Of a stretch of 64,000 nt of DNA, positions 25,001-37,000 are shown one piece after another. Position numbers and translations under genes: made by a program. Source of the DNA: Bugula neritina (Eukaryota > Animalia > Bryozoa). The notes beneath the pieces were generated by a model. It worked only from the letters and a program-made list of their open reading frames with translations. It was not told the origin of the DNA and did not search any database. The first letter of the stretch is position 1; every line of letters starts with the position of its first letter. The DNA is taken from positions 3,772,722-3,836,721 of the forward strand of contig OZ037766.1 of the NCBI GenBank assembly GCA_964035545.1. Reading direction: 5' to 3'.

Positions 25001-28000
25001 ATTTTTATTGCACTGAATTTTAGGAGAAAAATATATTAAAAAAAGTTACCACTTACTACTTAGCATAGTTTAATCAACTGAATCCCAAGTATATCTCAGA
25101 ATTATCAGTTTGAGCTCAAAGTCAATTTTGGTCTCAACGCAATCAATGACTCACTAAATTATTATATATTTTATAAATTTAAATAAATAATTGGTAGCCT
25201 CAACTTAGACCCAGAGAGTGCTTGGATAGGAGTATCTGACATGGTTGTTGAAGGAGCTTATCGGACACCTTCAGGGTCTTCCATATTGTTTACTAGTAAG
25301 TTAACTCAAGTTCTAACTCTTTATTTTTTATCTAGTTTTTTCTTGAGAAGCTGACCATTTTATTGCACTACTTAGTAAGAAAATTAAGTTGGTAAATGTT
25401 ACATGGTACAAAACACAAAAAAGATATTATATAATTACTTAGACAAACATAATATACATTCAACTAGCAACGGTGAAAATCGTTTTCATTATGGTATTCA
25501 TTAACTACATAATATATAAGTAATATCTAAAGCTTGCACCTGGTTGGGCTCTGCTATAAAGATATTTTTAATATTAAATAATTGTTTTACTAAATTATAG
25601 ATAGCTTATGTAAATATAATACAAAAGAGTATTTTGTAGTTTATACTGGTAAAAACATATTATACGTTTTACAGCTGGATACATAATTTTAAGCTTCATA
25701 AACTCCTTAAAACTATTTAAAGTAATATATAAGTATTAGAGCATTGATCTGCCAAAACCGACTATTAATGCTATATCATTAAAGTTGTCTCCATTCATTT
25801 CAGAGTGGGCATCAAACCACCCAGTCTCCTCTGAAGCTGAAGATTGTGTGAGAGTGAATACAGACGGAGAGTGGGAAGTTGTGGATTGTTCAGCTGAACC
25901 ATACTTGGCTCTCTGTGAGGTTGACTATCCTCAGTCTTCACCAGGTGAGTTGGTTATATATCTTCTTATTACTATATTATTCTATACAGAAAGTAGAACT
26001 ATGTTGAATATTCAACAGGTTAGTTGTTTATATATCTTCTTATTACTAAATTATTCTATACAGAAGGTAGAACTATGTTGAATATTCACCAGGTTAGTTG
26101 GTTATATATCTTCTTATTACTATATTATTCTACACAGAAGGTAGAACTATGTTGAATATTCACCAGGTTAGTTGGTTATATATCTTCTTATTACTAGATT
26201 ATTCTATACAGAAGGTAGAACTATGTTGAATATTTACCAAGTTAGTTGATAAAATATCTTCTTATTACTAGATTATTCTATACAGAAGGTAGAACTATGT
26301 TGAATATTTACCAAGTTAGTTGATAAAATATCTTCTTATTACTATATTATTCTATACAGAAGTTTCAGCTATTGGATATTTAAAATTTATAGTCTTTTTC
26401 TCACATCTGTTTTATTTATTTGAAGTCAAAACTTCTTTAAATTCTAAGTTTAGTTAAGGTTCAATATTTACTAATTCTTACCTACTGCCCTATGTTTATT
26501 TTGCCTTTGATTGTTAACCAGTTTATAGTGCTAGTCTGATTCTCCTAGTATATGAAATCAACATCTGTACTTGTCTTTATATAAAATGACAATGCTGTAC
26601 ACAGGGGCTCAGTCATACATGGGCTGCTACCTGGATGTCTCCACTGATGAAAGTGTATTCTATCCAGCAAAGTTGAGTTCAACAGTTGAAGAGTGCGCCG
26701 AGGCGTGTCATGAAAGTGGTCACATGTTTGCTTCTTTTAACCTTGATAGTAAGTCAAATATTGCAGTCATTATTTAAGATTATTTTTAAAATTGTACTAT
26801 TTTTGCACCGTTGTTCAATTGTTTTTCGTTTTTGTAAGAAATATATTAAAAGTTGCAAAACCTAATATTTTAGTTACTGTGTAACCATGTAAGTTGGCTA
26901 AACCTTTTACAAAAACATAGCATCGGCATTTTATTTCTTGACTACTTTACTGTTTTAAATATTTATTTGAATTGAGTCCATTGCTATCTTTTAGACTTTA
27001 CATAATTTGCTGCTTCGAATATCTAACAATCAGCATATAAATCTGTTGTATAGAAGCATTTGATTTTAATAGTTTAGTAGTTTGTGTCAGCTTTCCTGTA
27101 CTTTACTGATGACTCTGAATGTGAACACATTTCTTTAACAGGTTCTTCTACTGTTGACACGCCGTTTTATTTCTCTGAGCTGGTTGACGAGGCATACGTA
27201 ACACTGTTACCTACTTTAGACACCCTGACTGAGCTTACTATTTGTCTTTACTACTTGATGGACGGAACATCTCAGGGTTAGTAGATAGTAGAACTATTTG
27301 TGTGTTCTTATTGTCTATTCCTGTTTATACTTTATCTTTGAATAAGTTCCGGTGAATGGTCAGCTTACCTGTCAGCTTTATGACTCATGCTGTCGCAGCA
27401 TTTCAAGTTGGTATATTTTCTGCTGCATTGTATAATCAGGAGACATTAACCTGTGATTGCTTACATAGAGTCAGCCATTCTCTACTACCAAAACTGACAA
27501 TAACTTAGTGTACTTCAATTTATCATGTTATCTACTTTTTGCAATCGTTTGTTTGTTGTTGAAAATACCTCAGTTGTGCTAGTAATAAATAAGAAATGTG
27601 ATTTTTAGATCCAAAATGTCAAAACATACTCAATTGTCTGTCTCTTTGCCATTATGGTCACCGTCTTAGATGTTCATTCAAATTTTATAAAATGAAGCTC
27701 ACTATGCCTCACTAACCTTGCTGTATAACAGATAAAGACAGATGTCTGCTGGGGTCAGACACCACCTCTTTCCGTCTGTGTAAGAGAGGAGACAACACTG
27801 ACGAGTACTTCTATTATAACTCACAGACCGGAGCCAGTCATCGATTCCACCAATCAGCAGAAGGCTGGGTCCCTGTCTGTCTCGTATCTGCAACAGACAA
27901 GGTGCTAATCTACGTCGGGGACAGCGGCAGCAGCACAGAGTTTGCTCAGACTGTTGGTACAACTACTCTAGACTCGGGGAGTAAAGTTATCCTCGGGCAG

Positions 28001-34000: not shown

Positions 34001-37000
34001 CTTATGGGGATGTTGCTGGTGTCAATGTAACAGGTTCTTACACCGTGTCCCAGCTTATTCCAGGTTGACATTTTAGTTATTTATTTATTTTAATAAATTT
34101 GATATGAATGCTACTATTTTCTTGCATATGAATAGTCATTAGGTTACTGAAATTTTGATTTACGTAAATTTTGTGGTTACATAATCAAAGTTTTATTAAT
34201 TTAAATGTAAATTATGTTATCTAGGTTTTAATACTTTTATTTAAATTTTTATGTTAGCTGTGTATATCTAGTATTTGTGTTTCATGTATATTATGTAGAT
34301 ATACCTAGTGCTCATTACTTGGGCTGCTGGAAAAGTAAAGACAGTACTTTGATGTCTACACACAGTACAAACTCCTCTAATAACAGTCCCTCATCATGTA
34401 GAGATACATGTTTCTCAGAAGGTATATTTATCTTCACCAAATCTTTTCATATCTTTTACAATAATCTGCTGTGCTAAAGCCTGTATGTCACACTGTTTTA
34501 TATTGTAAAGTAATTCAATGGTTGTTGGCTGCAGAAATTAGCGTAAGGGTTTACTGAAAGACACCACTAGTAAAGAAGACCCTTGACTCCAACTATTCAA
34601 TTGAAGTGACATTAGAAAGGATTGTGGTCTATTTACAGTTTCCATTTCTTAATAATTGCACTGCATTGTATGTTACGTATCAGAACAAATTTTGGTATTC
34701 TGTTCAACAGATAAAGTATTCTAATGTTAGAAACGTCTGAAGAAGCATTAGTCAGGGAATATAACTCCTAAATTGAACAAACTCCTCTCTAGTTTTATGA
34801 TTATAACTAGAGAGCTGCTACAGCTAGACTTACAAATTTTGTTCATACAGAAGTTACAAGACTATATTTCAACAATGTGATGCTTTTTGTTACTTAAACA
34901 TGTTTATTGCTTTTTATTCTCCCACAGCTTGTAGTTAGTAACAATTACCTGCTGTTACCTGTACATCACATCTACTCCACATATATTCTAACTTGTAGAA
35001 TTCAAGTATGCTACACTCCGGAATGGACATGGCTGTGAGTGTACTAACAGCTATCAGGAAGGGGGTAGAAGTGCTGAAAGTACATGTTATGTACCCTGTC
35101 CAGGGGATGCTTCCTACATGTGTGGGGGGAGTGAGAGATATTCTGTATACAGCACTGGCTTCTATGGTATATATATGATAAAAATTACACACACACATGC
35201 ACGCTTGAAATAATTAAAATACATTTTACATTTTTATAGCTATAGCAAATTGCACATTTACAGATTCTCAATGTAGAGTCATGGCCCATTCACTTTAAAG
35301 AAAACAAAACTTTTATCTAAAGATTTTTCTCTAAAATCAGTCCTGATGTTTTAAGTGAGATGTAAATGATGACTCAGTAATTCATCTGCAGGTGTTTCAG
35401 TGACGTCTCTACTAGAGCCTCAGATTCCAGGGACAAGGTTTGAGTTCAGTTGTGTGTCTGGGTACCAGCCCGTGGTTAAAGGTGGAAATAACATCACAGA
35501 GTGTGACATCACAAACAGAAAGTGGACTACTGAAGGCTTTTACTGCAGACGTGAGTTAATTTATTCAGCTGCCGTGGAGGTTCTGCTGACTGTGTTCATA
35601 CTTTTTGTTGGATTTAAATTTACGGCATCATTTATTAATATATTTTTAGAAATAAGTTCTATTCAAAATTTGAAATAAAGAGTATAGTAATTCTTCAGGC
35701 ATATTATATACAACTTTTTACATATATTTGAAACAACCTCGAACTAGCTATAAAGCAATTTGTTTTAAATTAGAAAACATTTAGATTAAAAGTACAGTTT
35801 AATTGTTTAGCATGCAACCATTTGTTGATATATAAATAGTACTTTTCAGTAACACTGACTCTAGTAGTAAGTAAACACAATGTTATAAGGAAATGCTGTG
35901 TTCTTGCAGCTGCTGAGTGCCCATCAACAGCACAAAACATAGTAAATGGTTCCGCAGTGATGGCCGGTCACACTTATCTAGATACTGTCATTTACTCCTG
36001 CATTGAGGGGCATTACTTCAGTGACAATACCTCCTCCCGTACCAGTGTCTGTCAGGCTGATGAAACCTGGACCATCACTCAAGATCAAAGCTGCCAGCGT
36101 AAGCCACTTTTTCTACAAAGATAAGATCATTGTTTAAATGAAGTGTTCACTGAGGTATTTATATGTTATTGCATATTTCTGTAGAAGTGGAACTACTGAA
36201 ACAGAGTGTTTATTGTGCAAGAAGGCTAGTTAGTTTAAGCAGTAAAATCGTTATACTTTTTAGCTGTATAAAAATTTGTGTAAAGATACTTTGTCATAGT
36301 CTCATAGTTTTTCCGTGAAGTTCTATAGGTTATGATTTTCTAGTGACCTAAGAATATGTCTCTCAGTTGACACGTTATCTGCTTGTTGTCTTCTCTTCCT
36401 TCAACTGGTACTTTACTGCATTAAAATTATGCATATATTACAATTTTGTTATCATTTTATTGTAGCTGTTGACTGTTTAGACCCACCGGCGGTTGATAAC
36501 TCTAATAGTGACATACCTAGCACACTTTTCAACTTCACAGTTACCTACGAGTGTGAGGAAGGGTATGCATTCAACCCCGACTTTGTTCAAGATAATGAAG
36601 CATCTCAGACTACGATGGAGATAACTTGTTCTGCTAATGGAACTTGGTTACCGAATGTTACTCATTGCCTTCGTAAGTTTACACATTTATGCTATTTATA
36701 GACTACCATTTGTCTGTAAGTTTACACATATTGGCTATTTATAGATTACCATTTGTCTGTAAGTTTACACATTTATGCTATTTATAGACTACCATTTGTG
36801 TCTGTAAGTTTACACACTTAGGCTATTTGTAGACTACCATTTGTGTCTGTAAGTTTACACACCTAGGCTGTTTATAGATTATCATTTGTTTCTATAAGTC
36901 AAATTTGTGTAAAGAAAAATAACATATTATAAAACACTTCTTACTGGGACAGACTGGGTCTTGGTGTAATTTACTTTTGATCATTCTATTTTTATAATTC

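Follow-up and report, generated by a model that had tools for sequence, protein, structure and literature searches.

We found a gene in the bryozoan Bugula neritina in which two small extracellular domains, a WSC domain and a Sushi domain, are each split into halves that lie on either side of other, complete domains. The gene occurs within the window, by which we mean the whole 64,000-nucleotide stretch that was analysed (GenBank assembly GCA_964035545.1, contig OZ037766.1, positions 3,772,722 to 3,836,721 of the forward strand). A preliminary description of this DNA had noticed two interleaved sets of exons and offered two explanations: either braided, mutually exclusive splicing paths give a short and a long isoform, or one protein has domains nested in other domains. 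The second alternative is supported by matches of the halves to an uninterrupted paralog, by a fused exon in a distant ortholog and by the conservation of cysteines. Very probably, the exons are spliced linearly, in the order in which they lie in the genome, and encode a single long extracellular protein whose domains are nested. The most fitting interpretation of the arrangement is that domains were repeatedly inserted into introns that lie inside domains, which gives a known architecture in an unusual form, with small hosts and repeated large inserts.

The host gene (3698..45511, forward strand, as are all parts described here) encodes a signal peptide, repeats of Sushi, WSC and C-type lectin domains, an F5/8 type C (F5/8C) domain, the nested region and then a Sushi array. 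The nested region begins with exon A1 (26605..26748), the N-terminal half of the host WSC, which carries cysteines 1 to 3 and reaches strand beta3. Block B1 follows, with nine exons that encode a pentraxin- or LamG-like domain (B1a-c, 27142..28476; exons 27142-27276, 27732-28031 and 28294-28476), an F5/8C domain (B1d-f, 28868..30348; exons 28868-29088, 29993-30094 and 30207-30348) and a C-type lectin, lectin 7, with a QPN/WND motif (B1g-i, 31004..32633; exons 31004-31169, 31572-31678 and 32493-32633). The fold label of the first of these domains is a lead only. Exon A2a (33160..33279) is the C-terminal half of the WSC, with cysteines 4 to 6 and without the Cys7-Cys8/CGG loop, and A2b (33986..34063) is the N-terminal half of the Sushi, with Cys1. 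Within the Sushi lies block B2, a complete eight-cysteine WSC encoded by two exons (34299..35166; B2a, 34299-34421, and B2b, 34999-35166). Exon A3 (35392..35550) then provides the C-terminal half of the Sushi, with cysteines 2 to 4; its N-terminal linker is also present in the ortholog. B1 comprises 499 codons and the B2 WSC 97 residues, and the split host WSC has about 87 residues.

Between 26605 and 35550, all 15 exons are bordered by AG/GT and share a single open frame. The same is true of all 19 exons from the preceding C-type lectin, CTL6 (24655..25944; exons 24655-24811, 25198-25295 and 25804-25944), through the next complete Sushi, Sushi 2 (35910..36098), where the linear chain resumes. 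The introns at the block borders measure 225-660 nt. Exon borders and phases bear out the block positions that had been noted (A1, the nine exons of B1, A2a and A2b, B2 and A3), and likewise the observation that every block border is in phase 1. However, phase 1 predominates in this gene, being found in 40 of its 52 introns, so that five phase-1 borders are expected with p ~0.27. The borders are therefore no pointer to alternative splicing.

An uninterrupted paralog on another contig contains neither insert. This paralog (G000:C1:25892000-25950000, L016-L021) is a large polycystin-1/REJ-like gene, and its translations read as an N-terminal array of lectin, WSC, F5/8C and Sushi domains followed by PKD- and REJ-like exons. 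The N-terminal part of the window gene is collinear with it, and the collinearity of the two genes spans ~25 exons. In the paralog, a lectin precedes two exons that resemble A1 and A2a and are separated by one phase-1 intron of 266 nt; these are followed by a Sushi encoded by a single exon and another Sushi. Comparing domains exon by exon, as we did throughout, we found that A1 and A2a match the corresponding WSC halves of the paralog (39%, E 1e-9, and 32%, E 4e-8), and that A2b (E 0.002) and A3 (E 4e-6) match opposite ends of its one-exon Sushi. The earlier reading of these exons as split domains is thus supported, the A halves being the two ends of a WSC and a Sushi that the paralog keeps whole. 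The unbroken state of both domains there shows that the halves form pairs, with B1 and B2 as insertions. Most simply, an A-type ancestor received both B1 and B2, the alternative being their loss in the paralog. The match to the paralog ends at the Sushi array, and neither the window gene nor its second copy (copy 2, described below) yielded a PKD, REJ, GAIN, transmembrane or channel part 3′ of this array, the actual 3′ end of the gene not having been established.

Searches of single exons against Pfam gave several partial matches to the expected domains. A1 alone matches WSC positions 1-43 of 82 (E 0.0015), while B2a and B2b match positions 1-36 and 39-82 and together form one whole WSC. A3 alone matches Sushi positions 21-52 of 56 (E 0.001), B1d the start of F5/8C (E 0.01) and B1i positions 72-106 of Lectin_C. 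With regard to the content that had been noted for B1, Pfam thus supports the F5/8C and C-type lectin domains, whereas the pentraxin remains a lead. The pentraxin-like exons have no Pfam match, and the two likenesses obtained, to Laminin_G_3 in the Atlas (0.93, with 120 of 256 features in common) and to neuronal pentraxin-2 (E 0.94), are to be taken as leads only. B2 has all eight WSC cysteines. A1 and A2a together have only C1-C6, as in the unsplit paralog, and the host WSC accordingly reads as a six-cysteine variant. Features typical of a Sushi are present in A2b (one cysteine) and A3 (three cysteines and the conserved Trp), and the single-exon Sushi of the unsplit paralog clears the Pfam cut-off. 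An AlphaFold model of the latter has pLDDT <50 at residues 1-31, and its quality does not suffice to locate the split.

The cysteine pairing of WSC domains in Kremen1 and yeast Wsc1 is C1-C6, C2-C4, C3-C5 and C7-C8, and C4 and C5 lie on strand beta4 (PMC5014086, PMC9024836). Since A1 carries C1-C3 and A2a carries C4-C6, all three bonds predicted for the host WSC cross the break, which falls in the beta3-beta4 loop. In standard WSC domains, C7-C8 and the CGG motif pack on this loop (L4), and both are missing from the host WSC. Loss of the CGG loop may free the beta3-beta4 loop to tolerate an insert. In the split Sushi, the spacing between Cys1 and Cys2 is 42 residues in both the window and the ortholog. 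The unsplit paralog has only 31 here, so that 11 residues are to spare as linkers.

The ortholog was found by scanning metagenome assemblies, some of them labelled BRYA16-1, with exon B1b, and its contigs represent one distant species. A metagenome scan using A1 gave no match. In the ortholog the order is CTL6-A1-B1-A2a-A2b-WSC(s)-A3-Sushi 2, with 31-61% identity and with all exons open and in phase. Exon order in orthologs had been proposed as a check in the preliminary description, and the interleaved order proves to be kept. In eight ortholog contigs from separate assemblies, one of which is a Logan run, A1 and B1a form a single exon of 276 nt. In either species, 29 residues separate Cys3 from the first pentraxin motif, and the fused exon aligns at the window junction without an indel. 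This equal spacing indicates a precise intron difference. The more likely direction is precise loss of the intron in the ortholog, since an intron also occupies this position in the C1 paralog, and such a loss would imply an A1-B1a junction in the mRNA. (An apparent gap between A1 and B1a in ortholog contig L028 was rejected; it is a scaffold N-run with a duplicated overlap.)

At the A1/B1a junction, a phase-1 GT is absent in all eight contigs. The closest candidates in phase 1 (GC/GT) lie 15 and 18 codons inside the pentraxin, the GT scoring -0.3, compared with a donor median of 7.0. Because there is no usable donor at its end, A1 of the ortholog is not joinable to A2a. Regardless, A1 and A2a each keep three cysteines, i.e., all six, a fact with no easy explanation other than folding of the WSC around B1.

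The ortholog also differs from the window in the number of inserts. In three assemblies, two WSC domains lie between the Sushi halves, while the window has one, and this difference argues that B1 and B2 are separate events and not one unit. In addition, a whole extra three-exon C-type lectin is located in the phase-1 intron between exons 2 and 3 of the ortholog's CTL6 (L029:3113-4570). It is absent from the window and copy 2, and appears to be a third insertion inside a domain. The exon phases of this lectin within lectin 6 would also permit chimeric splicing. A 577-nt record from a Mediterranean metagenome (L015) contains the pentraxin-like B1b exon of a third species, with the acceptor at the same position.

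Copy 2 lies inverted on the same contig as the window (G000:C2 ~3665000-3703500, reverse strand), ~70-110 kb upstream and head-to-head with the window gene. Translations of the DNA between the starts of the two copies suggest an SLC22/MFS-like transporter gene. Copy 2 has the same exon order, and its introns are 71-96% identical to those of the window gene, although the flanking DNA is different. Every cysteine and splice site is kept between the copies, and 47 of 47 residues in A1 and 38 of 39 in A2a are identical. The ortholog shares with both copies all 3+3 WSC cysteines and 1+3 Sushi cysteines. Ratios of dN/dS between the copies are 0.27 for the A blocks, 0.23 for the pentraxin and F5/8C part of B1, 0.21 for the B1 lectin and 0.43 for B2 (few changes), consistent with purifying selection on all A and B blocks.

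We propose that B1 was inserted into a phase-1 intron that already split a six-cysteine WSC at the beta3-beta4 loop. The B2 WSC lies within the first Sushi, where Cys1 precedes it and the strand that bears Cys2 follows. Both hosts would fold around their inserts and would be closed by the WSC bonds C1-C6, C2-C4 and C3-C5 and, in the Sushi, by C1-C3. In this form the inserts would project as side branches from a polycystin-1-like stalk of lectin, WSC and Sushi domains, and the larger branch would bear a sugar-binding lectin. We speculate that the branches could be out of the stalk's line of tension. The domain content suggests a role in glycan binding or adhesion at the surface. Segments homologous to both ends of a domain flank complete domains in one frame, which is the sequence pattern of domain insertion. 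The types of domain inserted here (pentraxin-like, F5/8C, lectin and WSC) have N- and C-termini that are close together. Nearby termini are generally needed by inserted domains (PMC13114784).

Several points weigh against nested domains. In catalogued insertions, the insert is smaller than the host in 77% of cases (PMC13114784), but the larger insert here is about six times its host. Protein searches yielded no spliced product at any junction, only single-exon fragments or unrelated proteins. The four sequencing runs that cover 30280-36200 (5.9 kb) are all DNA, and give intron coverage and no splice joints. Two of the block-border splice sites are weak (the A2b donor, 1.4, and the B2a acceptor, 1.3), the others being in the gene's usual range. 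In the window an intron still separates A1 from B1a, which makes skipping mechanically feasible in this species, and it is conceivable, if rather doubtful, that skipping of B1 or B2 happens alongside linear splicing. As single exons, A2a and A2b have no Pfam match, which counts against refolding of the halves. It also fits the idea that the protein is linear and its halves are conserved without refolding, so that A1/A2a and A2b/A3 are remodelled linkers or have cysteines paired with other chains. The poor N-terminal half of the AlphaFold model of the unsplit Sushi points the same way. However, the window, copy 2, the ortholog and the unsplit paralog all share, without change, exactly those cysteines whose bonds would cross the break, and A1 and A2a are nearly identical between the copies. 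We regard an absence of refolding as quite unlikely.

The alternative of braided splicing envisages two isoforms, one short (A1-A2-A3) and one long (B1-B2), and leaves no place for a nested product. The uniform phase of the block borders would indeed leave any combination in frame, the A path yields the architecture of the C1 paralog, and the fused exon of the ortholog holds an internal phase-1 AG scoring 5.0 that is a possible entry to a B-only path. However, this AG is missing from A1 in the window, and the phase is simply the gene's default. The A path is donorless in the ortholog, and yet the A1 and A2a cysteines are conserved; moreover, the number of B2 domains depends on the species, with B1 and B2 varying independently. 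An examination of ungapped DNA repeats revealed no complementary intron elements that are conserved between the two gene copies. The sole notable long-range inverted repeat (27397/33419; E ~0.007-0.01 within the window) is missing from copy 2 and was rejected as a splicing element. Braided, mutually exclusive cassettes are thus not upheld and we judge them highly improbable. Even for the window species, which has the A1/B1a intron, we would give little credence to exclusive A1-A2-A3 or B1-B2 paths with a rare or absent nested form. Another element of the preliminary description, a 34063>35431 junction, also fails, because the CAG of the acceptor at 35431 is CTG in copy 2 and the site scores -5.2, compared with a median of 6.3. 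A mis-assembly that shuffled the exons might be suspected from the tandem repeats at 29062-29828 and 32646-33110, the second of which is spanned by no listed contig piece. By contrast, contigs of four DNA runs support the local exon order, and three of these runs, being mostly 90-99% alike to the window, come from other individuals. The order is also repeated in copy 2 with different flanks and in the independently assembled ortholog, which already refutes mis-assembly. We therefore take the interleaved order as real and consider an artifact to be extremely improbable.

Two further candidates were rejected. A 33-nt micro-exon at 35240-35272 that could be a second N-terminal Sushi half is not in copy 2. 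The idea that the Sushi intron arose when a segment of an exon was duplicated in tandem was suggested by a similar ending of A2b that is not kept in the ortholog. We found no published account of this gene or of braided multi-exon cassettes, within incomplete coverage of the literature.

Lectin 7, in the larger insert, is the most variable part of the gene. Between the copies (window:31004-32633 and G000:C2:3673171-3675225), it has ~54% amino acid identity and dS of ~1.9, versus ~0.1 elsewhere, and the other exons are 87-100% identical per exon. This pattern suggests that the copies have been homogenised except at the binding domain. The sugar-binding motif is QPN in the window and EPN in copy 2. 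In the ortholog, the last exon of lectin 7 is tandemly duplicated 47 nt apart, with one QPD and one EPN version (L031:1629-1951; L022:8416-8738, L023, L028-L033). EPN is associated with mannose-type binding and QPD with galactose-type binding in C-type lectins. The pair is a candidate for mutually exclusive homologous exons, which would switch sugar specificity. The variation among QPN, EPN and QPD points to a recognition site on the putative branch.

In the ECOD survey of domain insertions (PMC13114784), as here, a host domain is interrupted by other domains (A1-B-A2), nested and multiple inserts are described, and close termini are common. The differences are that the hosts here are disulfide modules of 65-90 residues, with a larger insert ~6 times the host, and that two events occur side by side, with a third in the ortholog. 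WSC and Sushi are unmentioned in the text of this survey and in those of its supplements that were examined. The inserts also resemble products of exon shuffling into introns, specifically gain of middle domains with symmetrical phases, in that multi-exon modules lie between introns of the same phase (PMC2926785). Intronic domain gains are mostly multi-exon (PMC2926785), but the receiving introns in our gene are inside domains and not between them. The polycystin-1/REJ-like genes are similar by virtue of the array in the C1 paralog, and differ in that neither the window gene nor copy 2 matches them beyond the Sushi array. Any likeness to Dscam-type exclusive exons is confined to the duplicated last exon of lectin 7 in the ortholog. 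The A and B blocks, by contrast, are non-homologous and have no conserved pairing elements. Looped-out domains whose host is formed by two halves are familiar from the fibronectin type II repeats in the catalytic domain of MMP-2/9, the split PH domain of PLC-gamma with its SH2-SH2-SH3 insert and the I-domain of integrin beta. To our knowledge, these hosts are larger or intracellular, and none is a WSC or Sushi clamped by disulfides across the insert.

Exon shuffling is usually pictured as the stringing of modules end to end. This gene appears instead to have accepted modules into intradomain introns three times, and to have retained them over a wide evolutionary distance. Such insertions would make a branched extracellular protein, and suggest that a WSC, Sushi or C-type lectin module, clamped by its disulfides, is able to host far larger inserts. 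This possibility bears on protein folding in the endoplasmic reticulum, on protein design and on annotation, given that Pfam shows only fragments of such hosts.

We now note properties of the rest of the window. In the Sushi array, at window:36336-44190, three pairs of near-identical exons (36336/41980, 40704/42906 and 41330/43506) reflect a duplication, while copy 2 apparently has one set. The DNA between the duplicated exons contains an inverted repeat of at least ~240 nt (37494-37718 and 40080-40319). Directly after the array is a separate short multi-exon gene (window:46900-48850, forward strand) that looks armadillo-like by eye and that we presume to be ARMH2-like. It is absent beside copy 2. 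Two short genes that face each other (window:50566-50868, forward strand, and 52948-53600, reverse strand) encode secreted low-complexity proteins rich in Gly and Tyr. Several minisatellites in introns of the host gene, at 9871-11027, 18214-18625, 25937-26362, 29062-29828, 32646-33110 and 36673-36899, begin where an exon ends, and some repeat the donor, for example in units of 28, 45 or 74 nt, which creates spare GT sites.

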